Shown here one piece after another: positions 12,740 through 58,842 of a stretch of DNA of 64,000 nt. The stretch covers positions 3,528,165 through 3,592,164 of the forward strand of contig CAJFCJ010000005.1 in the NCBI GenBank assembly GCA_904063045.1, written 5' to 3'. Made by a program: the position numbers and the translations under genes. Source of the stretch: Dimorphilus gyrociliatus (taxonomy: Eukaryota > Animalia > Annelida). Below the pieces are notes generated by a model. That model saw only the letters and a program-made list of their open reading frames with translations, had not been told where the DNA came from and did not search any database. Position 1 is the first letter of the stretch. Every line of letters begins with the position of its first letter.

Positions 12740-13892
12740 TCAATTTCTACCACAAAGTAAAAAAACAGGCCACTCAACCGTGAAAGTAACGTTAGTCGGT
12801 ATGTTCTCTTCTTGAAGTGTTTCTTCAAATCTGTCGTTTTGTAAATAATAAATATAAACTATTCAAATTATTATTGTAATAAAACAAAAGAAACTTGAAT
12901 ATACCTTGAACGGAATAATTTTAATGGATCTGTTTTCCTGTTGGCTACGTAATTTCTATAAAATGACCATGAACCTAAATATCCTGCATAATCATCTAGA
13001 TTCATTGATTTGTTAGTTTTCATTGAGTTAATTCTGTAAATAAAAAATGAAGTTATTCTATAAATGAATCTCTTTTTAAAATAAATCTATTTAGTTTACC
13101 TTGTAAAATTGTTAAAAGGTAGTTCAAAATCTTTGTAATGATTGGCTACGTGATGAGTTGCCGGAGTTTTAAAATCATCCAATTCGTTAAAAAACTAAAA
13201 TAATAGGAAATTTCCAATTTTTTAATGATATTTCTTATTAAAGTCAATATTTAAGTTTTTATTTACCGTTAATCTAAAATCATTCAATTTTGAATTAACA
13301 TGGTCATCGAATTCTGCGACGAATGGTAATGCGTAGCTAAATACAGCAAGACATCCTCCAGGAACTAGAACTCTTTTAACTTCTTTATAAAAGTTTTCGA
13401 AAGGCTCAAAGAAGTGAAAAGCCGTTCCAGCAAAGATTAACGAAACCGAATTATCTTCTGCAGGTAACTTTTCAAAACTTCCAACACTAAACAATTTATT
13501 GTTGTCATTAAAATTAGTATTTGTTGAATTAATTAATTAATAATTTGTCTACTTACGTAAATTCTACATTATCGTGTTCATTATTTCTTTTAGCCTCAAA
13601 GATTTGAGCTTCGCTTATGTCCAATCCAATAATACGGTCAAAGTGATTGGCCATTAATTTTGTACTTTGACCGGATCCACAGCCAACATCTATTGCCAGT
13701 TTCCTTGAAAATGGTTTCTCAAGCTGATTTCAAAGAATAATGTAATGATTTTTTAGTTTGATGATTTAATTTCACCTTTTCATCGATAAATTGAAGAATT
13801 TCTTTAGCCAAAGATTCTGGATAAGTCGGTCTGAAAGTATGATAGGCTTTTGCTACATCTTTATCTGCGTAGAGTGTCTCATACATGCTCAT
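12740..13892 (-). CDS. Class I SAM-dependent methyltransferase, DDB_G0268948-like (paralogue 2)
   Basis: MSMYETLYADKDVAKAYHTFRPTYP..., DVGCGSGQ, FHFFEPFENFYKEVKRVLVPGG, ending VEWPVFLLCGRN*. Exon structure matches paralogue 1. Confidence 0.85.
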
Positions 13893-41444: not shown

Positions 41445-43325
41445 ATGGCTAAGCATCCGCAGCTAATTGGCATTAAACAGAAAATTCAAAAAGATGTTGA
41501 GTAAGGAATATACTTATAATCCTTATATAAACTTTCTTATGATCTATCAAAGAAATATCTATTTTTTTTGCTTTAGGCAAACCGAAATCCCGATGTTGTT
41601 GGATTCTGAAGATAAAGTGATTGTCAGGTATAAGAAAAAACTAGCTTTTTATTTTTCTGTATATTTCAATGCAAATTCTAGGGCGGAAGCGCATGCTTAC
41701 AAACAAACTTTTCCGAAAGCATGTAAAATAAATGATCTTGAAACGTGGAAATTGAAAAATTTCGACATGGAAAATTTGCGAAAATTTGCTCCTTTTCTAA
41801 TTGAATTATTCGGACTTACACCCTTAGAATCGAAAAGCAAATTGAAGTTCGCTGTTAAACCAATTGGCTATATGTTAGCGATTTTTGTCAACTTGTATAG
41901 TGGTAAATGGAATGGCAAAAGAATAAAGAAAAATGAAGGATCTCAGATAATTTTGGAATTGATTCGCTTGATTCTATCCTGTGGTTTTCTCGTTTACCCA
42001 CCGGGTGATCTTCAAGAAAACTGCAATGCCCGTGCAGCAACGTTTTCAAATTATCTGATTGTTAATCTTGGATTTAATAAAAATAACAAGGTCTGACTTC
42101 AAAATATTCAGTAAAAAATAATAATAATACTTGTACTTTGCTACAGTGTATAGGAGTAATAAGCATAGACCTATATCAAAACAAAATCTTAAACATTACA
42201 TTTAGGACTAAAGACGATTCTATACAAAGAAAAGAAAAACAGGAAAATAAAAAAAGGAGGCAGCTTCATGACAAAAATTGTTCTTTCATAGACATAAAGG
42301 AAAGAATGGATATGTCGAATGTCAACTGTAAAATGGAGTGTGAAACCTCAATAACATGTACAGTTGTTTTCCAACAGCAACCTTCAACAAGTGACAAATA
42401 CTTGTATAAGCCAGATTCGGACCAAGCTGACAAGATCATAGTTAAAATACCAGGTTAAAACAATTATATAAAATTAGTCCACATTTTTTGATATTATTAT
42501 ATCTTGAACAATACAGAAACTGAAAATGAAGAAAGATGCCAAAATAATACCAACAGAGGAACAGTTTCAACATTTAGTAAGGATGTCAGATTATCTACAG
42601 TATACAAATCTAAATTTTTGTTTTTGATATATAGCTACTGAAGAAGTTAAACAATCAGTGGATGAGTATAAAAACGCTGATGGGAATATGTCACTGATAC
42701 TTAATAGTAACAGCGATTGGGTAAAACTTTAAACGTTACATTTTAATGTTCAGTATAATCAATCAACATTCTCTCATCTAATAGAAAGAACTGCAACGAA
42801 CAAGAGATTTTATTGATGTTGAGAATGAAGGTACAAAATTAAATTGTATTTAATTGATACTGTATAAATAAGGATAAAGATTCTAATATTTAATAAAGAT
42901 CCGTATGGAGCAGATAAAATTTTCCTGGAAAATTTAGCTGAAGATCAGGAATCCTTGTATCATTTTTCGAAGATTGAGGAAATTTGCAACAAAGGTACGT
43001 AAGATAATTTAAAAGGTCATTATATTATGTAATATTAAATTATCTAAAGTACTTACAACCTCTCTATATGTTCATACGAATGCTATATTATTTAAAAGAT
43101 TACAACTATTCAGACGATGGTCAAGCACCAGGGAAGTTATTAGATGATGGAACCAACAAAGAATGTTGTTTTTATCGGAAAGGCAAAAGAAAAGGGAAAA
43201 TTAAAGGTAGAGAAGATATTTCATTGTTGATAAAAAGAATTATAATTTGAATATATTAAATAGATCCTACATATAGGAAGAGCCGGAAGGAAAATTTCTA
43301 TGATAGAAGACACAAAATCAAATGA
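41445..43325 (+). CDS. Array member A: NRF1/EWG-like domain protein with acidic tail, apparently intact (about 9 exons)
   Basis: Continuous spliced frame MAKHPQ...ENLRKFAPFLIELFG...KPIGY...ILELIRLILSCGFLVYP, followed by small phase-compatible GT-AG exons to TGA 43323-43325. Confidence 0.65.
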
Positions 43326-43587
43326 TTTTAAATAAAAAATTCATCCTTGTTTGTACGATGGAGAAAATGTATTCGTCATAAATGATATAATGATGATAAA
43401 TCTATTCCTAATACAATATAGGGAGATTTTAGGATGACTATAAATATGAAAATCACTTAGTTTTGCTTTAAAGTAATGTAGTTAGCAATATACTTTCTCT
43501 ACAAATTATTAGTTTCTTCAAAAGGATAAACGTTAATCTGAGACGCTGTTTTCAATTATACAAATTATTTTTTCCTTTTACAGGTCA

Positions 43588-45800
43588 TGTTCATGAATTC
43601 TTTACAAGATTCGTTTGTTCCTCGTATTACGGAATTGCTAATAATTCCATATAAAATTGTATTTATAATACTGTTTATTTGTCCCGATGACTTGACATCA
43701 AGTCAACTGTCCTAGATTTGACTGAGTCAAACACCCTCTTAAAGTAACGCTAGCATACTAACATATATTCACTGACTCATACTAACACATAACATCCAAA
43801 CGTTCTGTTCATTCTCCCGCAAATAGTAGTTCACCCGCGGCTCTAATAAATGGCCCCTTTTTGGTCTCGATCCTGCACTTTCTATAAATTCCGTCGTGGT
43901 TAGATAGGATTTCAGCTAGGAATCCAGTTATCCATTTATGTCTCGCTTTTTGTTTGTTCGAGATTAGGACTTTATCTCTGACTTGCAGCTTTCTTCCTCC
44001 TCTCATTTTCCGTTGTTGCCTTACAAGTTCTTGGATGTATATTTTCTTCAATTGTCTTTCGATTTCATTCTATCGCTTCTTATTTCACATGCCCTCACTT
44101 CATAGTAGTTCCCTATGTCGCCTTTTAATCGTGTTGGACGTTACCAAAAATTGGTCAGGGTCGTCCAATGGCTGCTGAAGTGGCTTGTCGTCCATAACCT
44201 TTTCTACCAACAGCCACAGCATCTGCCACTTTCTTTCTTCTCTCCCTGCCCCATGTTCTTTCCTGTGACAGCTTGGTTGAGTTCGCGTCGAGACCCTCCG
44301 TCATCTCAAGCCTCACCATCTTGCTCTGTAGGCATATGAAGAGACGTAAAGTTTTCCCCTTTTTTCTGCCTGAATGTTCCAAAGTGGTCGATACCACTGT
44401 ATCTGAATATTTCTAGCTCGTTTCCGATTTGGAAGGAGTAGGGTTCATTGCCTTTCTGCTCATATCGGATCTTTGATCCGTATTTTTACTCCCTAATGAT
44501 TTGTCGTATTGTTGTGACCTCATTGAGTACCCGATAGGTTTCTCTGAGGATTGCTCTTATTCTAGCCAAAGGGGCGTGGCAATTATCTTCGTAGACCTTC
44601 TTTACGAGTAGTTTTCCTATTCCGGATCTTCCATCCAAAACTCTAGGGTTCTCGTATCACTCTCCTTTTTGCTTATTCGTCTCTGTTGGATTCTTAACCC
44701 ATCCTTTTCTCTCATTATGGCATTTTTGCCGGTCTCCCTCCTTCTATCCTTTGTCCCGCGACCGACCATCCTAGCTTAGAGCACATAGCAGCAAGTTCAT
44801 CCACATCTCCTTCCAATATTGTTCTGCGTGGCATCATGTCTATATAGCCCCACCCTATCAATAGGTCGACTTGCCGGTTTCATAACTCTGGTACCTGGAT
44901 ATCTTTTAAATACGGCCATTTCATTCTTTCTGGTTCAGTGATGGCTTATTGGTTTATGGTAGCAATCTGTTGATATTCCAGGGCTTCCAAATCTCCTCCC
45001 TTAATTTAGACGGTATATTTCGCAGCCCCTTATGCCGCTCTATTCTTCCCGTTATTGCGAGATCAACTTTTACTATCTCAATAGGTCTTGTATTAACCCT
45101 TCTAGCTGCCTCTGTTGTAATGATTGTCATATCTGCCCCGGTATCCTGTATTATTACAAGATTACCGTTTTAGGTGTTTAGTTCTAGGGCAGTCATCCCA
45201 TTCTCTTTCTCAATCCTTTACTATCATAACCCTTTTGGTGGTACCCATTTTTTCGCATTGGTGCAACAAATAATTCTTTGCTGCCCACATATTTTACATC
45301 TAGGTTTCCAGCATTCCGATGGGTTGTGGTTGCTAGTTGTACAGTTTTCGCATAATCGTGATTTTCTCACTAGATCTTCTATATCCATCCTTTTAAACTG
45401 TGGACAGTTTCTCAGGGGGTGGGGCTTATCGCATGCATAACACTCCAACTCTTTTTTATTTCCTTCTCTTCATTCACTCTTATTCTCAAGGCTCAGAATT
45501 TGTTGTTGGTCTATTGCTCTTTCCAGCCCCCGACTCTGTATCTATAAATTCTGCCATGTCTTCGATAGATAGGCTTGTTTTCGCTATAGCCTCCTCGCTA
45601 TTCCATCCAGCTCTTAGCCGAGCGTTCATGTTGAGTTTGCTTACGACCACTTGCATTGCCTCTAGTTATTTGTTGTCCAAGTCATCCCGGTCTTTTTAGT
45701 CGGCATAGACTTCCATCAATATCTGGCTTAGTTCTCGATGCTGATGGATGTTATCATCATGTATTCTACCCAACCTCTCCAAAGAACAGGTAGCCTTACT
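43588..45800 (-). mobile_element. Decayed, internally deleted BEL/Pao LTR retrotransposon
   Basis: Gag Cys/His knuckles (CYACDKPHPLRNC..CENCTTSNHNPSEC..CKIC), protease IIQDTGAD, DLLIGG..LGW, integrase (GIDHFG..LFICLQSKMVRLE) and a C-terminal DUF5641-like VRDKVLI...W..G...DGIYR. Multiple stops and frameshifts. No RT/RNase H or 5' LTR seen. A putative 3' LTR lies at about 43588-43811. Confidence 0.85.
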
Positions 45801-45839
45801 TTAAATAGATCTATTTATAGAATCTATTTTATAAAATGT

Positions 45840-46497
45840 TGGTTATAGGACAGATGTACCGTGGAGAGATCCCAACAACTGGATGGGAAGTTCAGAATTG
45901 GAAAAGCCAAGGGCAATTGAGCTAGACAGAATGATCAATGAAATAATAAGGGTAATCAAAGTATACGGCGTGTTGTACTTTGGCACTGAAGAGACATTAA
46001 ACAATTTGGTTGATGTCAAAATTCTTCAATCAGGGGAAAATAACATCCACGAATATCTTAAAGATGATATTGATCTTAGGCTGACATACCAATCAGAAAG
46101 CACTGATAGGGAAGTCAGTGTAGAAATGGGAAATTCTCCAGGCATTCACGAATAGCATCAACCATCCCCAGAAATAAAATAGAATTATCAACTGAGAAAA
46201 ATCATCTTCAAATGGATTATCAACAATTTGGACAAATGCCGGAAAAGGTATATTCTACTGAAACTCAGCCATGTAAGGAAAACGCCACTTTTGATCCAGG
46301 ACATGAAAATAATCCAGAACAATTCGACGGTATGTCAGCAAACCTTTTGTTAAACTTCTATAGTCTATGATTATGAAATTCCAATAGATTTTTTCGATAC
46401 GTTTCCCGTCGACAAGGTGAATGCTGCTCTAATCGGGCATAATGACGAAAATTTGAATGCTTCAGCCGTTCAATATCAAATGTACACGGAAGACTAA
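45840..46497 (+). pseudogene. Array member B: 5'-truncated chimeric pseudogene
   Basis: GYRTDVPWRDPNNW...MINEIIRVIKVYGVLYF, in-frame TAG at 46153-46155, then a frameshifted join at 46170 to a copy of the last exons of member E. Confidence 0.75.
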
Positions 46498-46603
46498 GAA
46501 ATCTAGAAATATCCAGCGTTGAACCATCTATCAATTTTAAATTCAACTCTCACGATATATTGAAATAATATCTAATATTTTATTTAATATTCACTTCTTC
46601 TGT
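46170..46603 (+). repeat. 434-bp direct repeat identical by eye to 53851-54284
   Basis: Base-by-base comparison found no mismatch, including within an intron. Confidence 0.93.
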
Positions 46604-46658
46604 CTAGAATAAAGAAAATTTTGATGAAAAGATGATAATCTCATTGATAATAGGTTAT

Positions 46659-46784
46659 AAAAATGATGTAAAACTACCAAAAATCAAACAAATGAAGAGA
46701 ATAGATCCAGTTAAAATGTAGATATGTTTAATTTTTAATACATGGGGTTTATGAATTGCGAACCACCTTTCAACAGCTCTTGCT
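46659..46784 (-). pseudogene. GPCR fragment (TM3-TM4) paralogous to the GPCR at 54876-55001
   Basis: Translates AVERWFAIHKPHVLKIKHIYILTGSILFICLIFGSFTSF. About 11 mismatches in 126 bp against the intact gene. Confidence 0.85.
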
Positions 46785-46792
46785 CCCTAGCT

Positions 46793-46885
46793 TTGGCTGA
46801 GTCAAATTCCCTTTAAAGTGACGCTAATATACTGACCTACATTCACTAATTCAAACTGACACATAAGATGCAAACTTTCTGTTCA
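46793..46885 (-). repeat. Diverged copy of the BEL/Pao 3' end (43719-43812)
   Basis: TTGGCTGAGTCAAA...TAAAGTGACGCTA...CAAACTTTCTGTTCA aligns with TTGACTGAGTCAAA...TAAAGTAACGCTA...CAAACGTTCTGTTCA. Confidence 0.7.
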
Positions 46886-47598
46886 ATTTCTATCCAATAG
46901 TTTTCGGTATTTTCCAAGTTTCACTTAAGTTTGAAATGATTCCTAGAAAAGGTTTCGGCGAGTCGCAAATACAATACTGTATATCCTTTGCTAATGTTTG
47001 CCTTTGAATGATTTTCGCTTCATTTATCGGTTTGGATAATAATAGAATTATTTGCTCGTTTTTGTATGACCAGAGAACCTGTAGCCTTATTTTAATTAGT
47101 CTTTATCGCAAACTCCATTGACGGAAACTGATAAAAAAAGTAGACTGGAAATGATAAACGACAAAGAAAATACCTTGTCCTGAAGTGTATTAGGAAGAAC
47201 AGGAAAAAGATCTGCATTATTAAATAAATCCATATAGAAGTTTTTTAAAAGATATGAAATTTATATTAGCTATGAAATTTGATCATAAAGACCTGGAATT
47301 GTCAATAACACAATATTGTAACTTTGCAATTCTTTAACAATTACTGTCGTGAGTGAACTATGCTGTTCAATAAATTTTAAACTACGCCTATTCAATCGTT
47401 TTGGTATAAAATATTAAAATTTTGTGAAAGCTTTTTCGTATTTATTCGTTTTTCTTTTATTAAAAAAAAAGTAATTTATTAATTATTTATTTACCTATTT
47501 GCTAATTTCTTTTATATCCATAGTTATTTTTTACCCAGTTTTCTAATAGATCAGAGGTACATTTCACCAAAACATACATAATTTGTTGCGAAGAAAAT

Positions 47599-50166
47599 AT
47601 GTCATCCAGACTTTCCGAATTCGATCTGATTAAAATTTCAGAAACGTTAAAGAAACAAATTGATAACATCAAAAAGAAGAAAAAAGCAAGAAAGTAAGAT
47701 GGAAGTATACATTGAATATCTAGTGATAGTTATTTTGTTGTAGACTTGAATATAAGGCAATGGAACTTAAAGAAGATGAAAATGACTTTAGTGAAAAGTA
47801 TAAGGACATTTCTCCTCTTTAATTTATTTAACAAGAGTATTTTGCAGGAGAATTTTTACGGTGTTGTACAAGTCTGCATATCCAGATCTTTTTCAATCAA
47901 ATAACGGTGCCTTAGATCACTGGAGTACCAAGAAATTCAACACAAAGCAAACTATAGAGTTTTGCAGCCAACTTATTAAGCATCATAAACTTATACAAGT
48001 TGAAGACGACTGCCAACAAGACTATAAAAAAAAACCAATAGGCTACAAATACAAAGAATTCATAAACTTAAGTAGCGGCACAATAAATGGACATCGCAAT
48101 GTTGCGGAACAACGAAATGAAACACTCTTGGAACTGCTTCGACTAATTCAAGAAAATAAAGGATACCTTGTTTATCCATATGTTCCTTCACGTAAAAAGC
48201 ATCTGTTAGAAAGTCGAGATGATTACTTTTTGGTCACTCTCAAGAAAAGCCAAACAAGCGAAGTACGTTTTTGATTTCAAGGATCAGAATTAAGGTTATA
48301 GCGTCCAATGGGGAATAGGGTATTGGACAAAGCCATTTCCTATTACCTTGACTCGTCTGCTTTTAGTATTAATTAAAATGCATACAAAATCTATGCATTA
48401 ATTGTTTAATATTCTACAGTGGTATGAAGTGATCGATGTTACACCGATGACAATCATAGATGAAGAATGCTCATCTACTACATCACATTCGTCCCCGAAT
48501 TCAGAGGACGTGGTTAATAATAAGGGTAAATTCAATTTCTATAAATAAATATTATAACCTAATGAATTTACATTTTCAATAGTTTTAGTTGATTTATCAA
48601 CTAAATCAGGACAGAGCTGTGAGACAGAAGAAGGATATGCAGCTATCAAGCTCTTTGAGAGGAATGAACGAGAAAGTTCTAATGACACAGCACGTTCAAG
48701 CGAAAGATTAGAGAATCAATCTAAGGATGGAGAGATACATCATATACGAACTTCTTCAGGTATTATACTAACACATTCTAAAGGAAACTGTTTAAAACTT
48801 ATCTTTATATTTCCTACGATTAGATTACTACAATTGCAATAACGGCAGTAATGGACTGACAAAGAAACAAAACAATAACTTTCAACACTGTCGATCAGCG
48901 ATGGAAAAATGCACCTATGTAGAAGGCTCTCCTAGCAGTTACTCACAAGGAAGCAAGGTCATTAGGGAAATGCAAGGTTAAAACAATTCCATATGATAAT
49001 CTATATTTTTTAGTATTATTGAACAATACAGACAATGAAAATGAAGCAAGATGCCAAAATAATACCGACAGTGGAATAGTTCCAATATTTAGTAAGGATG
49101 TCAAATTATCTATTGCATGGAAATCTAAATTTTTGTTTTTAATGTATAGCTGCTGAAAATTCATCTCTGAATTCATATGAAAGCGATAATGAGAATGTGT
49201 CACTAAAATCAAACACTCAAAAGAATTCGGTAAATTTTCAACATTAGATTTTAATATACACCATAATTAATCAACATTCTCTCATCTAATAGAATCAAGA
49301 GCAACAACTACCAAGAAGCTATGTTGACATCGAGAATGAAGGTAAAATTGAACACTGTGTTATAGGGATATTAATTCTATTATTTGAAAGATCCGTATGG
49401 AGCAGATGAATTTGTACACGAAGCTTTAGCTGATGATCAGGATTTAGTGTATAAACTTTCCGAATTAGACGAAATTTTCCCATCAACCAAAGGTAAGTAA
49501 GATAACTTAAAAGGTCTTTTATTATTTAATATAGTATTATTAAGGTGAAAACCCTATCAAGTCGGAGAAAAATCTTGACAAAAGTTCCAATTCAGATAAC
49601 ATCTTCGGGAAGAATATAAATGATACAGTAGGTTCATAAATTACAATAGCACATATGAACTAGTTTTATCCTGCTTTAGACCGAAATCATGGATACAGCG
49701 CAGCGTTTAGGTATAGTATCATCTATCTAAAAAATATAATAACTGTTATTTATACATATTAAGTATTATCAATAATTTTTCTAAAAAATAAAGGGGAATT
49801 TGCAGTTGCCTTTCCGACCGATGATGTAATAAATCCATCCATGGATTGGGGGCCTACCGGCATCATGAAAGAGACGACGGAACATTCTAAGGATCAAGTG
49901 GCAGTGACGAAATCAAATATGAGTAAATATTTCTAATAGAACAAGAAGATTATATAAAATATAAGCTTTAATAAGGATAGCGTTATGATTTTAATATACT
50001 TTATTGTCTATGTTTAGTGGAAGACCATAACCACATCAAAGAAGTGAATGAAAGTTTTCCCATGAAACAGGAAAGGATAATTAAAAGAATCAAAAGAGAC
50101 GAAAAAAACCGCCAGAGAATTGAATACTGTTCTCTGGCAAAACAGGATATGGACACGTCTGATTGA
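47599..50166 (+). CDS. Array member C: NRF1/EWG-like domain protein with long acidic tail, apparently intact (about 13 exons)
   Basis: MSSRLSEF...KKKKKARK, then KKPIGY...LLELLRLIQENKGYLVYP and a chain of phase-compatible small exons to TGA 50164-50166. Several exons and introns are visibly paralogous to member A (49010-49520 vs 42490-43020). Confidence 0.7.
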
Positions 50167-50560
50167 AAAAGATGTTTTATTCTATTATTCTATGATAGTT
50201 GATACTCTGTCGTTTCTTTTTCACATGTTTTCTCGATACAGAATATTTGTGCTATGAGCTGTGATTGGACCTTAAAAAATTAAGAGATGATTACCGTGTG
50301 TACAAATATATAGAATGATTTTGTCACAAATCTTTGATACATTTTAAGCATTTAGACTAAAGTTTATCCCTCTTCACCATCCGATAACTTTCTGAAATTT
50401 TCATTACAGCTTGCAGGAGAGAATTTCTATTTAAAAAGCGTTCAGTATAAACATTAACGCCCTATCGTGGAATATCATTATTTACGTACCTTCATCATAA
50501 ACTAAGTCATAGCTAAATACAAGTTCACTACTGAACGGAACACAACTGAGTTCACAGATA

Positions 50561-51556
50561 ATGAAGCGAGGAAGAGTTAGACGAAATGAAGCTTTCCCAT
50601 ATTTTTCTTTCTTACAAGAGTTGACTCGTAGAAGGTAATTTTATACTTTGTATAGAACAGATATGTAAAATATATAAATATAAGAATAGGCCCAAAAAAA
50701 CCCATATATTGCTAAGCATTGCTTACGGCTTCCTTCAAAAAGATTGATATTTCTGCTGACATGAGTTGGTGGGAAAGTTATAATATTGATGACAAGAGGA
50801 AGCATTGCACATCACTTATAGTTATGTTTGGATTTTTACTTTGTGGAAGTCAACAAGGAATTTATGAGAATAGGCCATTTGGGTATAAGAAAGGTGAACC
50901 GCGGCCAGATCCCAACAACTTGATGAAAAGTTTAGGATTTAACAACCAGTGGAAGATAACATCCACCAATATCTTAGAAATGTCATTGATCTTAAACTGA
51001 CATATCAGTCGGAACACACTGATAGGGAAGTCAGTTTAGAAATCGGGAATTATCCAGGGATTTACGAACAGCATCAATCATCGACAGAAGTATCCGCTAA
51101 TGAGATAAACTCTCGTAGCAGATACGCACAGAGAAGCCCGGTAATAGTCGAAATACAAGGTTAAATTTACCTGCCAAACAAAAATAGGAAAGGCAACTTA
51201 AACGGTAATTTTATGATGAAACATTATTTCTGTCTAAAGTGCTTACAAACTCTCTGTATGTCCACATAAATATTATATTATTTACAAAATTTTAACTATT
51301 CAGATGATAGTCAGGCACTAGGAATGTTATTAGACGATGTAACCAATAGAGAATGATCTAATGATAATTTATCGGATAAAAAAAATCAATAATTTGAATA
51401 TATTAAACAGGTCTCATATGTAGGAATTTGTGTGATAGAGATAAAGGGAAAATGGTTGTTACTTCTTCGATCGAAGAAATAATTAGTCAATACAAAAACT
51501 GGTCTGCTGATGAGTACGAAATGAGGAAGGCAGATTTTTTCATCTATCTAAAATAA
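50561..51556 (+). pseudogene. Array member D: pseudogene with internal deletion
   Basis: MKRGRVRR first exon, stop/frameshift near 50713, RPFGY...PDPNNL, about 124 bp missing relative to member B, and tail exons similar to members A and B. Confidence 0.7.
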
Positions 51557-52349
51557 GATAAAGAAATACTCTATCTATCCGTTTCGTTGATAGCACGTTT
51601 CTTTCACTCATCCAAATCTTTATAATCTGTTCACGGAAAAGATAAGATTATTTGACCTAGTAATATGATTTATTATTATTGAATAAATGTCATTAAAAAG
51701 AGGTAAAATAAACACAGGGGGAAATGAAAAATCACTTTATTAATTTCTCTCTTTATGTTCTGCCTTTGTGTCTTTTTAAATATTTTCGGGTATATTCAAA
51801 ACACGTGTTTCCTATGACGTTTTTAAAACACAAATTACCTGTAACCGTACTAATCATAAGGCACATATATACTTTTTAATAAATATGGTTATCATTTTAA
51901 GGTATAACCATAATGGCGGCAAGCGGAGCTCAAATTATGTTTAATCGTAGATATTTGGCTAATAAACCTCACTTTAATGATTATCTAAGGTTAATTCTTT
52001 GTTTATTTATATATAAATTTATATTCGTCAATATTTATTTATATCTTAGGTATATCAATTTCGCTTGATTGCTAATCCAGCAACTAAAACTAAATCCTAA
52101 ATAACTGTTGATTCAATCATAAGTCAGTGAAATATTTCATCAGAGTTAATTAATCAGGTCACTCTCTATTAATGAAAATAATAATAGGCCTACAGCATAC
52201 GATTTTAAAATTACACCAAAACGGATAATTGTTTTAAGATACTAAAATTTACAAATATATTTTAATAATCATAGAAGATTAAATACTGCTTTTTAGAGAT
52301 GATGGTGTTATCAACAGACTGCCGATGAGAGGACGCCAACGATCGGACA

Positions 52350-54178
52350 ATGGTATATAAATTTTTCATTTAATTGGTTCTATATTTTTTCATAGTATTG
52401 CTTGTTTTATCACGGAAAAGCCATACGAGTCAGGTTCTTGATCAACACATTTTCAACAACGATGATAGAACACTTTCCCCCCAATCGTCCATTGAAAGCG
52501 GAACAGTTACGTAAGATAATACCAGTAAATATTAAGATTTATGGCTGTTGTGAGGCAACACAGAATACTTCACATAAAGATATCTGGAAAAACGGTAAAC
52601 CTGCATTCTGGGATAAAGATGTTTACTTCGGGGATCCCAACAACCTATGCTCCATGTTGGGGCACAAGCCAAAAATGGAACAACTGATTCCGATGTATAC
52701 AGAAATAAAAAGGCTGACTAAGAGAGATGGTTTGCTGCTATTTAATCCTAAAACAGTAGAGGATGGCTGTCTCTTGATCCCAGATTGTGCTGATCATCTG
52801 TTCGAAGAAAATTCGTTTACGGTGATTGTTAGAAAGACAGGTCTTTAAATTTGATTAGCGATTTCTATTAATATTATAACAAACTCCTTAAATATTGCAG
52901 ATATTGAAGGATCAAGAGAAAAACAAAATATCCCGCAATTTCAAATTCCAAATTGGAATCTTCTTGGGATTGGTAATTCTCTACTTGTTCTCAGAATTAT
53001 AAATCTATTTAATAAATATTTCAGATGCATATCCTTCCACTTCTTTTGATAGACAAGCTACGTATGCAGAAGAAGATAATGTTCTAACTCCTACAAGTAT
53101 TATACTAAACATTCTAATAGAAACTGTGTGAATATAATGTTTTTATTTCTTCCCATTAGTTTCCTGTAGTTATGCTAACACCAATGATGGACTGGCCAAA
53201 AGCAAAAAAATTGAAAAAGAAGAACACCCTATGGAATTGGATCAACAAACTGAACAAGAAGAAGAACCTATGAATTTGGATCAAGAAAATGAACAAGAAG
53301 AAGGATTTTGCAAAAAGCCTGTAAGTTTATCAATTCTTAATCAATATGAAAAAGAGTGCATTCAATTTTATTTACAAATTCTTTCCTTTTTTGAACAGAA
53401 AAATGCTTTGCAGGGTATGAATACTATCATTAAATATTATATAATCAATTTTAATCACAATTTTTTCACTGTTCTCTATGATAACTCTAAGAGAAACAAA
53501 GTACAGAGGAGGAATACGTGGACGTCAAATCAAACACGTCAAAATCATTTCCAACGTTTGAGAACGATACTACCGAGAGTTCTGTTTCTTGTGAAACTGA
53601 TATTAATGATTTGCATTCGGATTGTCGGATACTAAACACTAGGCCGATGCATTGGATGACAAACAAAGCAGCAGCATTGAGTCAAGCAACGGAAATCAGT
53701 TTGGGAGCTGAAAATAATGTTTGTGATTTGAATAATCAGCAAAGACACACTCTTAAAAATCGATCTACCAAAAGTAGTGAAAACACTAACCAACAGGCAA
53801 GACAGTTAAAAAATCAGCCATTAAACACTGGGTTGATGGTTGCCATAAAAAGAAATAAAATAGAATTATCAACTGAGAAAAATCATCTTCAAATGGATTA
53901 TCAACAATTTGGACAAATGCCGGAAAAGGTATATTCTACTGAAACTCAGCCATGTAAGGAAAACGCCACTTTTGATCCAGGACATGAAAATAATCCAGAA
54001 CAATTCGACGGTATGTCAGCAAACCTTTTGTTAAACTTCTATAGTCTATGATTATGAAATTCCAATAGATTTTTTCGATACGTTTCCCGTCGACAAGGTG
54101 AATGCTGCTCTAATCGGGCATAATGACGAAAATTTGAATGCTTCAGCCGTTCAATATCAAATGTACACGGAAGACTAA
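52350..54178 (+). CDS. Array member E: NRF1/EWG-like domain protein with acidic tail, apparently intact
   Basis: ATG|intron|YCLFYHG...EQLRKIIPVNIK...KPAFWDKDVYFGDPNNL...MYTEIKRLTKRDGLLLF, followed by phase-compatible exons (including a 16-nt one near 53400) to TAA 54176-54178. Confidence 0.7.
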
Positions 54179-54370
54179 GAAATCTAGAAATATCCAGCGT
54201 TGAACCATCTATCAATTTTAAATTCAACTCTCACGATATATTGAAATAATATCTAATATTTTATTTAATATTCACTTCTTCTGTGTCTAGAACAAAGAGA
54301 ATTTTAATGAAAAGATGATAATATTATTGATAACAGGTTTTTGTGCTCCGTAAGTTAATTAACGAACTCT

Positions 54371-55291
54371 TCAATGAGTTGTTGCATAAGCATTAGATGT
54401 TGGCGCCATACTTAGAGTCGTAATTCGTGATGATCTTCTGAGAATACTTTCTTTAATATTCTGTCTAAAAGTTTGTTTAAAGATCATGTAAACAAAACAA
54501 TTTGTTGAATTATTAAAGTAATATGAATATTTAAGTGATATATTTAGATTTTTCAAATAACTATCTAAAATAGAAGGAAGCCAACAAATGAAAAATATTA
54601 ACGTCACTCCAAAAAGCATTGTAGCTGATTTTATTTGACTTTTCATTTTTCCAATCATTTTATTGCTATCATTCGTCCGTTTCTTTTTTGTGTCTTCTAT
54701 CTTTCTTAAAGCAACCCTAAATATGGATATATAGGCTAAAACAATTCCGAAAATTAGTAACATAAAAGCAACATGTGACATAATTGTTGTCAATTTTGAA
54801 AAGGAATTATTCACATTAGGTTGACATTTTATATAGATTATAGTAGTATTTTCATAAATTGTTACATTTGAATAGAAAAATGATGTAAAACTACCAAAAA
54901 TTAAACAAAAGAAGAAAATAGATGCGGTTAAAATGTAAATATGTTTAATCTTTAATACATGTGGTTTATGAATTGCAAACCACCTTTCAACGGCTATTGC
55001 TGCTGATAAGAATATAGAACATATAGTTAAAATATGTAGAAGAGATGATACGCATTTACACATTATAGTACTCTCAATTATTCTCAATTCGTTTACAATA
55101 GTTAAAGGAATTGCTATTGAACAAGTTAGCAGATCCATTATCGCTAACACTTTAATAAAAAAGTTTGCTAATGTTGAAAATTTAGCTTTAAAAGGATAAA
55201 ACTTTAGTATAATAATATTTGACGGAATACCAATAACTGTATACATTGTCATTAAAGGAATAAATAATATCAAATCGCTATACATTTTCAT
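54371..55291 (-). CDS. Single-exon orphan class A (rhodopsin-like) GPCR
   Basis: Seven hydrophobic segments with GIPSNIIIL (TM1), LAIMDLLTC (TM2), AIAVERW (TM3), FFICWLP (TM6) and NNSTNCFVY (TM7). First in-frame ATG at 55291. Confidence 0.88.
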   Translation of the reverse strand: MKMYSDLILFIPLMTMYTVIGIPSNIIILKFYPFKAKFSTLANFFIKVLAIMDLLTCSIAIPLTIVNELRIIESTIMCKCVSSLLHILTICSIFLSAAIAVERWFAIHKPHVLKIKHIYILTASIFFFCLIFGSFTSFFYSNVTIYENTTIIYIKCQPNVNNSFSKLTTIMSHVAFMLLIFGIVLAYISIFRVALRKIEDTKKKRTNDSNKMIGKMKSQIKSATMLFGVTLIFFICWLPSILDSYLKNLNISLKYSYYFNNSTNCFVYMIFKQTFRQNIKESILRRSSRITTLSMAPTSNAYATTH

Positions 55292-55864
55292 ACCAAACGT
55301 GATAAGCAAGAAGATTTTCTCAGGAGAAAATTGATGTAAATCCACTTATTTCCAAGTTGGTAATGATGTAGAATGTAGTAGTGCATTAAAGAAAAGTGTT
55401 ATAGTACATAAACCTAACACTATCCGCATTATTAATTAGTAATTACAGAATATATATACAGTGCATAGACTGTATATATTAGTATAAAGATATATAGTAG
55501 TATTTCTTTCATTATGGCTTAGACATTATATCAGTCAATATGCTTTCTTCTTTTTCCTATTGAAGTAACTTTTTTTGTGTAATACACAAATTAAAAGAAT
55601 GAGATATACGGTATATAAATGTAATACTTGTTTCATATATATAGTAAAACCGTCTAAATATGTTTTCTCTGTAAACAAATATAAACAAAAATGGCGGAGG
55701 GGTATAGTCAATAATGAGTCTATTTTTTGGTACTACTACATAAGACTATCGTATCGTAATAGTAATATAATACGATATTTAAGTATTTAATGTCAATAAA
55801 CTATGTGAGTTTCTACTTTTTTTCAAATGTATAAATACTTTTAAAGAATTATCAAAATGGAGTT

Positions 55865-57346
55865 TTATTTAACAATAGGTATTTCTTCAATTTCTTCGTC
55901 AGTATCATCAATATCATAAATACTACTATCGCTACTTGTAATGCTTATAGTACGTTCTCTACTGCTGCTTAAACGTTTTGGTCCATAAAAGGGCTTTTTC
56001 TTTTGAGGTTCCCCAGGATCGTCTATAGTCAATACCAAATGGCTACCTAAAGTGTTCCTTAAAATTTTCAGTCTTCTATCAGGTGAATAACGAGGACATC
56101 TCTATAAAATCAAACCAATAGTAATTTATTATGTTATTTAATATTATTATTATATTACTTCTCTGGCTTCACGTAAATAGTTAATTTTTCTATTTATCAT
56201 ATCGTCAAAAAGTTTCAATAATTTTCCATTAACAACTTTTATTTCGCTATTATCTTCTCTCTGATCGATAATTGAATAAAGCAGCTTTCCAAAACATTCT
56301 AACGCCTATAAATAGATATTATGGAAAAAAAAAGTTAATTAGTATATAAACATGTGCTTATAAAAAAGTACAACATCTTTAAGATTCTTCGTCGTTTCAC
56401 CCCAGGCAATATTTATCCTTTTTTCCGATATTTTTATTTGATTAGTTTTCTTTAAAATGAATATCCTTTTTTCAAAGATCTCTAAAACATCAATAATAAT
56501 TATGTAGCATAAATTTTCATCAAATTTCGCATACGTTTTTATGATATCATTTAAAAGCATTTCTTCAGTTTTTCAGTTGGAAAAGAACTACTAAATTAGT
56601 ATTGAATGTCTCTTACAAGTACTCAACTTATTTTTAGCATTGATACAGAGAGCATTAATACATATTGTCATCATACAATATATACTGTATCTAATTCTCG
56701 TGTATTAATTGATATTTTCGAAAAATACCTGAGCTTTGATACTTGTACTAAACATACTATTTATTGGTTGTGGCTAATACTAATACTATTATTATTAAAC
56801 ATTATATAAAGTTTAACAATGCGTTTCCTTCTTTTTCTTACTTTCTTACTTTCGTTTCGTAACTGTTCCTTTCAAACTGTCGTTTCGAAATTGACGGTTC
56901 GTTTTGCATAATTTGTTATTCTTAACTGTTTAATCACAATAGTATATCGTAGTAATAAAAATTCATTGACTACTTGAAGTAAATTGACTATTACTAATAT
57001 TTACATGTAATACATTTCGCGATTAAGTTAAAAACACTAATCTATTCGAAATTATATTCAATAACACTTTTTGAATATACAAATAAAGCTAAATGAATGC
57101 ATAAACCACGATTCTCACAAAAATAACAAAAAAAATAGAGGATAAGAAACTGGTATTTATCTTCAAGAAAAGAGAACGACGAATTTTTTGATGATCTGGT
57201 CTTTTTAGATGATTCATTATATAACCGTTATAATTTATTTTAGTTTCATAATTTGCTCTGAGAAAATTATAGTGTGAATCATTTTTCTTTGGCTTATGAT
57301 ATTTTTCATCCAGGAAGTTTACTAAATTTATATAAACCCTAATCAA
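55865..57346 (-). CDS. Multi-exon uncharacterised gene or pseudogene; 5' end unresolved
   Basis: GT-AG-bounded open segments at about 57150-57358, 56845-56930, 56350-56590, 56160-56310 and 55865-56103 (RCPRYSPDRR...DDTDEEIEEIPIVK*). One internal join could not be made in frame. Confidence 0.45.
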
Positions 57347-57498
57347 CGACTGATCTTACAGCATTCGAGGGTCTCGCCTCGTCCGGAAAAATCGACTAAA
57401 TTTCCACCAAGTTTAGGAAGAAATTACATTTTCCATTGTTTCTTTTTGTACATTGTGACAATATTTTAATTTAAAGACAGAATAATAAGAAAACGAAT

Positions 57499-58842
57499 AT
57501 GCGAATAAATGAAAAGGACACTATTAACAGAAGGGAAATGGGTGATTTCTTTATTGCCATGATAGAGAAAATAAGACAATTCTCTCATAATAAGTAAGTA
57601 GATTCCATATATTTGCATATATTACGATCATTTTAAAAGGTATCAAAAAAATTTTGTGACAATGCCCAAGATTAAGAGTAGTGGCTCAACGTAGAATAAA
57701 TATAATAAATATACTAATATCTAATGCTAACTCTTTTCATATGGCAGCAACCAAATAACTAATAGGGTAATTGCCAGCCCAACTGAAATTAACAATATTT
57801 TAAATGAATGTAAGTATATGAAAACTTGTAATGCAACTTTTTAATACAAACATTACACTTTATGTTATTTAATCTTTATAGTTCATTCAAATACTGAAAA
57901 TGTGATTGAAGTACGATGGAAAGTTAATGAATTTAGATTAGAGACTATCAGCAAAATTAAAATGTTATTGAATTACAACGATTGGAGACAATTAAAGGTT
58001 GAACAACTAAGATCTCTTATAGCAATCATTATAAGAATGTTTTCGTGTGGACCTAACTTAAATACTGGATCAATTTTTTTACACAAACCTCAAAGCTATA
58101 GCCATGAGATAATATTCGGAAATCCTCATAATTCATTTAGACAAAGCAAAAATAAATTAAAAAAAAACAATTTATTGGACATGCTAACAGAATTATCAAG
58201 AGTTATAAACCTGCATGGATTTCTATTCTATAGCAAGGTTTTATCAGTTGAAGTAAATTCGCCAATGATACCTTTAAGAAACCAACCGTGTTGTTACTCT
58301 TCTTCAATATCATTCCTTTTGCTAAAGGAAACAAATGTTGCAAATAATGATTCAATGAAGTTTTCTACTGAAGAAGAAAGTTTTCACGATTTAGAAGTCA
58401 TAAACCCACGTAAATATTACAACTAGACAACCTAGTGATAATTCTATATACAAATATATTATTTTACGAATTTAGAGGTAATTAACGATGATAACTGGAA
58501 TAGAAGTAATTTATCTTCCTATAATTCATTATATGAATACTTTCAAGATGATAGTAATAAAGAACAAAGTATTTAAAAATTGTTCACTCATTTTAACTTT
58601 TGTAAAAATTTACTCTTTCTCCTATTCTACCAGACGTCGAAAATCGTTATACTGAATTGAATAATTCTACAATCACAAATGTCTTTTCGCCATGTGGAAC
58701 AGAGAATGTCAACTATTCCAACACGGACTATAAAACAGGTATAATCTTAATATTATAAAACAAAAGAAAAAACTAAGGAATAAAGTATAGTTCGTATTGA
58801 ATTTTTTTTCCTTTTGATAAATTCCCCTTCGTTTTAGCTTGA
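57499..58842 (+). CDS. Array member F: most divergent NRF1/EWG-like domain protein
   Basis: ORF 57902-58426 contains WRQLKVEQLRSLIAIIIRMFSCG...HKPQSYSHEIIFGNPHN...MLTELSRVINLHGFLFY, followed by small acidic exons. The 5' exon joins are uncertain. Confidence 0.55.

Follow-up and report, generated by a model that had tools for sequence, protein, structure and literature searches.

A 64,000-nt stretch of the Dimorphilus gyrociliatus genome (referred to here as the window) contains six related loci, A to F, which are all located on the plus strand within 17 kb (Table 1). The first-pass annotation had reported six genes at these places. All six loci are present, one at each place, and their similarity exceeds chance, but only four of them (A, C, E, and F) are intact genes, while B and D are decayed copies. 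A profile search of 989 six-frame open reading frame (ORF) pieces revealed no copy beyond A to F within the window.

Table 1. Coordinates of the six loci and of their main parts (window positions).
Feature	Position	Strand	Evidence
Gene A, predicted	41445..43280	+	ORF list; tblastn A-C 6e-14
Domain ORF of A	41467-42093	+	ORF list
Copy B, decayed	45841..46656	+	sequence, blastn, B/D alignment, profile match 6e-5
Gene C, expressed	47599..50330	+	1851-nt transcript contig with GT..AG joints
Copy D, decayed	50719..51426	+	blastn blocks, alignment
Gene E, expressed	51736..54400	+	GT..AG joints, splice check
E exons	ATG 51913, to 51989; 52297-52352; 52421-52840; 52901-52972; 53025-53096; 53160-53320	+	RNA joints
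E exons, continued	micro-exon 53399-53413; 53491-54010; 54069 onward, stop near 54176	+	RNA joints
E domain exon (whole domain, 139 aa; piece used for folding)	52421..52840	+	AlphaFold, phmmer
Gene F, domain ORF, intact, predicted	57902..58423	+	ORF; tblastn E-F 5e-10; external-only profile 0.002

RNA reads of one transcriptome run document both splicing and expression for genes C and E. Gene C has a putative ATG near 47599, a domain ORF at 47861-48271 and a stop codon near 49934, and its transcript ends at 50330. Nine RNA-supported introns of 49-83 nt are located between 48526 and 49793, and the frame remains open for 327 aa from 48420. Its start is of the KKKKKARK type and its tail is rich in S, N, E, and D. 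Since an exhaustive search found ambiguous splice paths upstream of 48420, the end of the C domain exon is approximate. The frame of E is open over ~500 aa across the joined exons and comprises a basic 44-aa start (pI 10.8), the domain in a single exon, and an acidic 317-aa tail (pI 4.6).

The tail exons of the predicted gene A are homologous to the tail of C (42445-43043) and to that of D (42988-43279), with 73% identity over 608 nt (blastn) and no stop in 95 aligned codons; homology with the C tail suggests that A encodes an acidic tail as well. The intact genes appear to share a plan in which a short basic N-terminus precedes a basic domain, and A, C, and E continue into a long acidic tail of low complexity. 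A basic N-terminus and an acidic multi-exon tail had been ascribed to every copy; this description fits E and C and probably A, whereas the predicted tail of F appears to be short.

What remains of the domain in copy B is its C-terminal half (45841-46152), and a stop is found immediately upstream of 45841. A premature TAG follows at 46153, where the corresponding site of D reads CAG in the alignment of both copies, and the segment 46170-46656 is a 98% copy of the last exons of E (blastn). D has lost 124 nt that are present in B (45900-46026; blastn and alignment). Consequently, its domain ORF (50719-50997) lacks the last motif and helix and the frame shifts to 50949-51161. A tail remnant resembling the tail of A is found at 51177-51426. 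The RNA contig over D has a depth of just 3-7, falling to zero at 51061-51257.

The copies are paralogues. Similarity between loci is above chance in tblastn comparisons (A-C 6e-14, E-F 5e-10, B-D 9e-16, B-E 0.006). When a profile built exclusively from proteins outside this genome (see below) was run against all 989 ORF pieces, the top matches were E (2e-12), F (0.002), and B (0.06); after addition of E and F to the profile, the top five were E, F, B (6e-5), A (0.026), and D (0.067). An hhalign comparison of an A and C profile with the enlarged profile gave P 0.0016 over 80 columns, with the motifs in the expected register. The domains share only 18-38% pairwise identity and the tails are mosaic. 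Adjacent paralogues on one strand, including the truncated and stop-bearing B and the frameshifted, deletion-bearing D, are what tandem birth-and-death evolution produces, and the divergent family of this kind that had been proposed is thus confirmed.

The common domain spans ~85 residues, is basic (pI 8.6-10), lies within a single exon and occurs once per protein. Its four motifs can be followed through the alignment of the window copies as described in the first-pass annotation, except that B contributes the second half only and D lacks the last motif. The loop of the domain reads DPNN, NPHN, NLYSG, or NLSSG, depending on the copy. No family match was obtained by Pfam at E<=1 for the six domain ORFs and two further tail ORFs, while a GPCR ORF tested alongside was matched. 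A word-indexed search with E, covering relatives of up to 259 aa, gave no match.

Sequence comparison places relatives of the domain outside this genome, and the family is therefore not lineage-specific as had been supposed. A phmmer search with the E domain exon reached the protein P0001 at 5.8e-4 among 1.8 billion proteins, and nine unnamed proteins (P0001-P0008 and P0012) carry the same domain with the pattern VKTLRKxIP...KPADWP..IPFKDPNN. They come from metagenomes and transcriptomes and measure 235-694 aa, with P0003 and P0008 being apparent fragments. E is 41% identical to the external family over 85 residues. In the external members, too, the domain is single and lies close to the N-terminus, and the C-terminal part is acid-rich. 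In contrast to the window copies, they are far more conserved in the domain (45-95% between members) and lack the ending E..R.I...G.L.[YF] common to the cluster. In 17 kb read around P0001 one copy was seen, as opposed to the tandem cluster in the window. A metagenome locus scan returned only the contig of P0004 itself. P0001 also gave a weak Ndc80_HEC match (E 0.003, below the cut-off), which was judged to be due to chance. In the databases searched, neither the cluster proteins nor the external ones have a Pfam domain or a name.

The first-pass annotation had likened the domain to the DNA-binding domain of the transcription factor NRF1, which binds a GCGCATGCGC palindrome as a homodimer. The Pfam search that it recommended did not detect this family: PF10491 (Nrf1_DNA-bind) produced no row for any of the six window ORFs or for P0002, P0004, and P0007 at E<=1, nor for P0001 at E<=10. 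Similarly, the family profiles A1, A2, A3, and P0004 did not reach the NRF1 chains among PDB sequences at E<=10 and returned chance rows only. However, the three NRF1 motifs quoted in the annotation match the external family, which had not been available to it, in the same order (z 4.3-5.4, p 0.0007-0.002, around 0.001), in a test whose input consisted of short fragments picked for resemblance and is thus not selection-free. Language-model features include an Nrf1_DNA-bind cluster (0.79).

In human NRF1, the DNA-binding domain comprises residues 201-284 (alpha5, the long linker2, and alpha6-7) and contacts bases through R206, N242, and R244, while a MADS-like dimerization domain occupies residues 54-172 (PMC10810270). 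When contact residues are assigned by motif register, rather than by residue-level structural alignment, the equivalent of R206 is the arginine of LRK. This residue is found in A, D, E, F, and every external member, whereas C lacks it. Neither N242 nor R244 is conserved; their sites correspond to D and N of DPNN, or to N/S in A and C, so that two of the three base-reading residues are replaced. The dimerization domain is absent from E, where 44 residues and then one low-confidence helix precede the domain within a total of only ~70 residues ahead of the first domain helix. In P0004, ~87 low-complexity residues lie ahead of the domain. No strand-rich element is predicted in either protein.

Structural comparison relied on two AlphaFold models, of the E domain exon (m1a97945e56fa) and of P0004, both derived from the same 13-sequence alignment. 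The E model has a core of residues 21-110 (pLDDT ~71-94) with four helices and a two-strand bridge. The Foldseek search that had been suggested gave a divided answer. For both models, the NRF1 DNA-binding-domain chains 8k3d and 8k4l occupied ranks 1-2 among 350,542 chains, at probabilities of 0.28-0.41 compared with at most 0.09 for every other row, yet with E-values of 0.3-1.9 and TM-scores of 0.33-0.41. VIA, which is independent of Foldseek, placed NRF1 at ranks 5 and 9 of 48,161 with weak Z-scores of 4.0-4.9 over 78-82 residues; one alignment (Z 4.9, rmsd 3.8, 82 residues) pairs model residues 9-101 with NRF1 182-275. Identity to NRF1 (17-18%) was the highest among the top ten VIA rows for each model. 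An ESM Atlas structural search remained uninformative, as all TM-scores were below 0.5. On the basis of these models, the NRF1 DNA-binding domain is the best structural match found, although every score falls within the range of noise. The proposed NRF1 likeness is partly supported, by structural rank and motif order; the scores are weak and the dimerization domain is missing.

Alternatively, the domain may represent a new fold or family without kinship to NRF1, in which case the likeness would stem from a common small helical arrangement and chance motifs, and the domain might serve protein-protein binding. All Z-scores are below 6, the Foldseek E-values are as high as stated, and neither PF10491 nor the NRF1 chains were found by sequence profiles. 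Moreover, unrelated helical domains score equally or higher, the ANT C-terminal domain being placed above NRF1 by VIA with Z 5.7. We nevertheless consider this explanation rather unlikely, as NRF1 had been named beforehand and then came first and second in Foldseek and within the top nine in VIA for two members, the four motifs follow the NRF1 order at similar spacing, and the basic domain is joined to an acidic tail. This combination is typical of activators.

The domain might instead have its nearer kin in the GTF2I-like repeat of TFII-I, with NRF1 being more distant, or a single superfamily might unite the three. This appears improbable: the repeat is neither on the Foldseek list nor in the top 50 VIA rows of the P0004 model, no PF02946 row was obtained by Pfam for the six window ORFs and the external members tested, and cluster and external proteins contain the domain once, without repeats. 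In its favor, the E model shows four helices and a two-strand bridge and aligns with 2dn5 (Z 3.3) and 2eje (rank 7 of 48,161 in VIA), the latter being level with NRF1 for this model at Z 4.5. Also in its favor, language-model features score 0.86 for GTF2I-bearing clusters versus 0.79 for the Nrf1 cluster. On the other hand, GTF2I aligns less closely than NRF1, with an identity of 10-11% and an rmsd of 5.3-5.9 (5.9 for 2eje). Language-model features of E list phage N6_N4_Mtase clusters at 0.87, and methyltransferase genes occur elsewhere in the window (ORF 13222-13494), so that DPNN could be regarded as the degenerate DPPY of a former N6/N4 DNA methyltransferase. That value is below the trust level of the tool itself, no Pfam methyltransferase match was obtained and the ~85 residues contain no SAM-binding motif. 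PF01555 was rejected on the basis of fold, as the all-helical E model has no Rossmann sheet, and this explanation is effectively refuted.

On balance, the cluster is best explained, with somewhat better than even confidence, as an array of tandem spliced paralogues, four intact and two decaying, which carry a stand-alone, distant NRF1-type domain and function as putative DNA-binding regulators under birth-and-death evolution. For the domain, we infer that it is homologous to that of NRF1, binds DNA, and acts in transcription. As an NRF1-like domain is present without the pairing domain of NRF1, the proteins probably represent an undescribed offshoot of this regulator type. In the proposed mechanism, the major groove would be read by the first helix, with LRK equivalent to R206, and by the long KPxxW...DPNN loop, which takes the position of N242/R244, while the acidic tail would recruit the transcription machinery. 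Variation of the reading loop between copies suggests that they recognize different sites. The cluster probably evolved by tandem duplication, with tail segments being exchanged, sequence being deleted, and one truncation that is associated with a retroelement. More tentatively, and with less than even confidence, the findings may point to an undescribed animal transcription factor family in several marine animals, in which an NRF1-type domain without dimerization domain had its base-reading loop rewritten to DPNN and variants and which expanded in tandem and diverged quickly in this genome; the sequence and fold of such a family might link the NRF1 domain and the GTF2I repeat as a superfamily.

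NRF1 is regarded as a single-copy regulator that binds DNA in a manner peculiar to itself. In the structure paper of 2023, no structural relative of the NRF1 DNA-binding domain was named (PMC10810270). If the NRF1 link is correct, a free-standing and diversifying second family on this domain would illustrate how the fold may change DNA specificity and would offer a natural series of loop variants. It would also add a regulator class to spiralian gene sets, which is counted as unannotated because these proteins lack a Pfam domain or name in the databases searched. Should the link fail, the cluster would still represent a genuine orphan family that is expressed and has relatives in other animals.

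Among known systems, the GTF2I-like repeat (TFII-I, GTF2IRD1; PF02946; 2DN5, 2EJE) resembles the cluster domain in size, helical fold, and the short strand pair and, among the language-model features, is the highest-scoring row to which a Pfam family is assigned, but occurs as several repeats per protein, whereas the cluster domain is single. NRF1/Erect wing/P3A2 (8K3D, 8K4L) differs in the absence of a Pfam-level match, in its MADS-like dimerization domain, in the replaced N242/R244 and in being a single gene instead of several tandem copies. Its likeness to the cluster domain lies in the order of elements, with the helix LR..IP (R206) followed by a long loop of KP..W and [IV][PY][WF] and then by a final helix that closes with G..LL[YF], and in a basic domain within a protein that has a presumed activation tail.

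Judged by their sequences, all six loci (A-F) are paralogues, in line with the first-pass annotation, which had described six mutually related domains. Three pairs gave firm tblastn matches (A-C, 6e-14; E-F, 5e-10; B-D, 9e-16), B-E reached 0.006, and A or C against E or F yielded E-values no better than 4-8. All 989 pieces obtained by translating the window in six frames were searched with a profile of E, F and an external protein family; the best five were E, F, B (6e-5), A (0.026) and D (0.067), and no further piece was matched. Aligned with this profile by hhalign, A plus C gave a P of 0.0016 over 80 columns in the correct register. The kinship is also drawn from tail DNA common to the loci (42445-43043 vs 48968-49540, 73%; 42988-43165 vs 51177-51355; 48717-48876 vs 53054-53211; 46170-46656 vs 53851-54339, 98%). 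The copies are 18-38% identical to one another over the domain, whose core is basic (pI 8.6-10.0) in all but B, where the half-domain has a pI of 6.3.

Matches elsewhere indicate that the domain is not limited to the Dimorphilus gyrociliatus genome. A phmmer search of 1.8 billion representatives with E returned a single match, P0001 (5.8e-4, 41% over 85 residues), and word-indexed searches from P0001 and P0007 added P0002-P0008 and P0012, of which P0003 and P0008 are fragment-like. These proteins are unnamed, no Pfam domain was found on them, and no description of the family was found in the databases and papers searched. They share the motif VKTLRKxIPxLR...KPADWPxxIPFKDPNN...KKPxKxEL.M..FL, and a profile of the external members alone reaches E in the window at 2e-12. 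L001, an AT-rich (28% GC), eukaryote-like ENA metagenome contig, encodes P0001, the nearest of the outside relatives, as an ORF of 425 aa without introns, and carries one copy within the 17 kb examined.

The cluster lies in an AT-rich window (GC 27-37%) among ordinary animal genes and a decayed retroelement, and its intron lengths of 49-83 nt are consistent with a compact genome (PMC7854359).

Features of the cluster and its surroundings
Feature	Position	Strand	Remark
ARS2-like gene	5-7.4 kb		ordinary animal gene
Axonemal dynein heavy chain gene	17-34 kb	-	ordinary animal gene
A domain ORF	41467-42093	+	ORF listing
BEL/Pao-type LTR retroelement fragment	43809-45750	-	decayed, GC-rich (42%); integrase C-terminal DUF5641 (E 2.8e-8); directly 5' of truncated B
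CCHC-knuckle ORF	45224-45448		within BEL/Pao-type fragment
B half-domain	45841-46152	+	sequence
C domain ORF	47861-48271	+	ORF listing
D domain ORF	50719-50997	+	ORF listing
E domain ORF	52402-52845	+	ORF listing
Rhodopsin-type GPCR gene	54371-55345	-	intronless; 7tm_1, 1e-22; between E and F
F domain ORF	57902-58423	+	ORF listing

Two copies are decayed. B is immediately preceded by a stop, its first domain half is absent anywhere upstream, and it carries TAG at the position of CAG in D; its 3' part consists of copied last exons of E (98%) followed by a copied GPCR piece (90%). This corresponds to a recent segmental duplication to the B locus (46170-46784 vs 53851-54339 and 54873-55001). D lacks 124 nt encoding the last helix, a loss that shifts the frame. 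At the DNA level the tails of A and C match at 73%, with introns (84%) more similar than exons (72%) and a dN/dS of 1.07 over 95 codons. Since no DNA similarity was detectable between their domain exons and surrounding DNA, the tails must have been swapped or copied long after the domains had drifted apart. Both tails retain an acidic motif, ENEDPYGAD..F...LA.DQ..Y, which may be an activation motif.

One public run, stored as contigs and mapped over 48500-54400 (C, D and E), behaves like a transcriptome and contains 15 GT..AG joints on the + strand. The C transcript of at least 1851 nt has nine tail introns and ends at 50330, and an open frame of 327 aa extends between 48420 and about 49933. 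The E transcript spans 51736 to past 54400 and appears to enter the 3' end of the GPCR gene. Once the joints, whose dinucleotides were checked, and a micro-exon are taken into account, E can be read without a stop over 500 aa: a 44-aa N-terminus (pI 10.8), a 139-aa domain exon (pI 8.8) and a 317-aa tail (pI 4.6). The 15-nt micro-exon (53399-53413, +; AAAAATGCTTTGCAG) has the support of loose contig ends on either side and keeps the frame open. Contig depth over D is just 3-7 and falls to zero at 51061-51257. The joined C and E models served frame and composition checks only, while searches and folds took single exons.

The claim that these are NRF1/erect-wing-like DNA-binding domains fared unevenly. 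Pfam searches of window copies and relatives did not report PF10491, and the NRF1 chains in the PDB were out of reach of the family profiles; structural ranks and motif order speak for it. AlphaFold models were made for the E domain exon (pLDDT 70, core about 71-94) and for residues 78-190 of P0004 (pLDDT 79); they are not independent, as the same alignment lies behind both. With either model, Foldseek placed the NRF1 chains 8k3d and 8k4l at ranks 1 and 2 among 350,542 chains (E 0.33-2.7, TM 0.33-0.41, prob 0.28-0.41 vs at most 0.09 for all others). VIA-align superposed residues 9-101 of the E model on NRF1 182-275 (Z 4.9, rmsd 3.8, 82 residues). Chance is unlikely to place a target named beforehand so high; the scores by themselves would prove nothing, and the models lend weak but consistent structural support. 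Three NRF1 fragments quoted in the first-pass annotation also match the alignment of external members alone, and they do so in the order expected (AQLRAFIPEMLK with KTLRKYIPVLRM, KPIWWPEDIPWAN with KPADWPEQVIFKD, plus the last helix), with R206 and N242 at positions that accord with published residue numbers (PMC10810270). The match stands out against shuffles (z 4.3, p<=0.0007) and natural triplets (z 5.4, p<=0.002), a test just partly independent because the fragments were chosen for likeness to the window copies.

A Foldseek-independent scan of 48,161 representatives placed NRF1 at rank 5 (Z 4.4) and rank 9 (Z 4.5), with the highest identity (17-18%) within the top ten of both lists; an ANT helical domain, itself unrelated, scored above it (Z 5.7). 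That the domain is a new helical one of no kinship to NRF1 is a minority reading and rather unlikely. In the same scan the GTF2I repeat 2eje equalled NRF1 for the E model (Z 4.5), and a language-model feature search scored GTF2I-bearing clusters at 0.86 and an Nrf1_DNA-bind cluster at 0.79; closer kinship to GTF2I repeats, or one common superfamily, is improbable, and no paper connecting the two domains was found in the literature searched. That the DPNN motif is a decayed methyltransferase motif deserves next to no credence. The domain is probably a true homologue of the DNA-binding domain of NRF1. The earlier observation was largely right, and its interpretation is partly supported.

We lean slightly towards a mechanism in which the proteins would be nuclear and use the LRK helix and the KPxxW...DPNN loop to contact DNA, binding as monomers or with an unnamed partner and acting through the acidic tail, while diverged loops would give each paralogue distinct targets. 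NRF1 requires a MADS-like dimerisation domain (aa 54-172) in addition to its DNA-binding domain (201-284) and reads TGCGC via R206, N242 and R244 (PMC10810270). In contrast, no dimerisation-domain-like stretch lies ahead of the domain here. The R206 equivalent is retained except in C, whereas the positions of N242 and R244 fall in DPNN in E, B, D and the external family, in NPHN in F, and in NLYSG and NLSSG in A and C.
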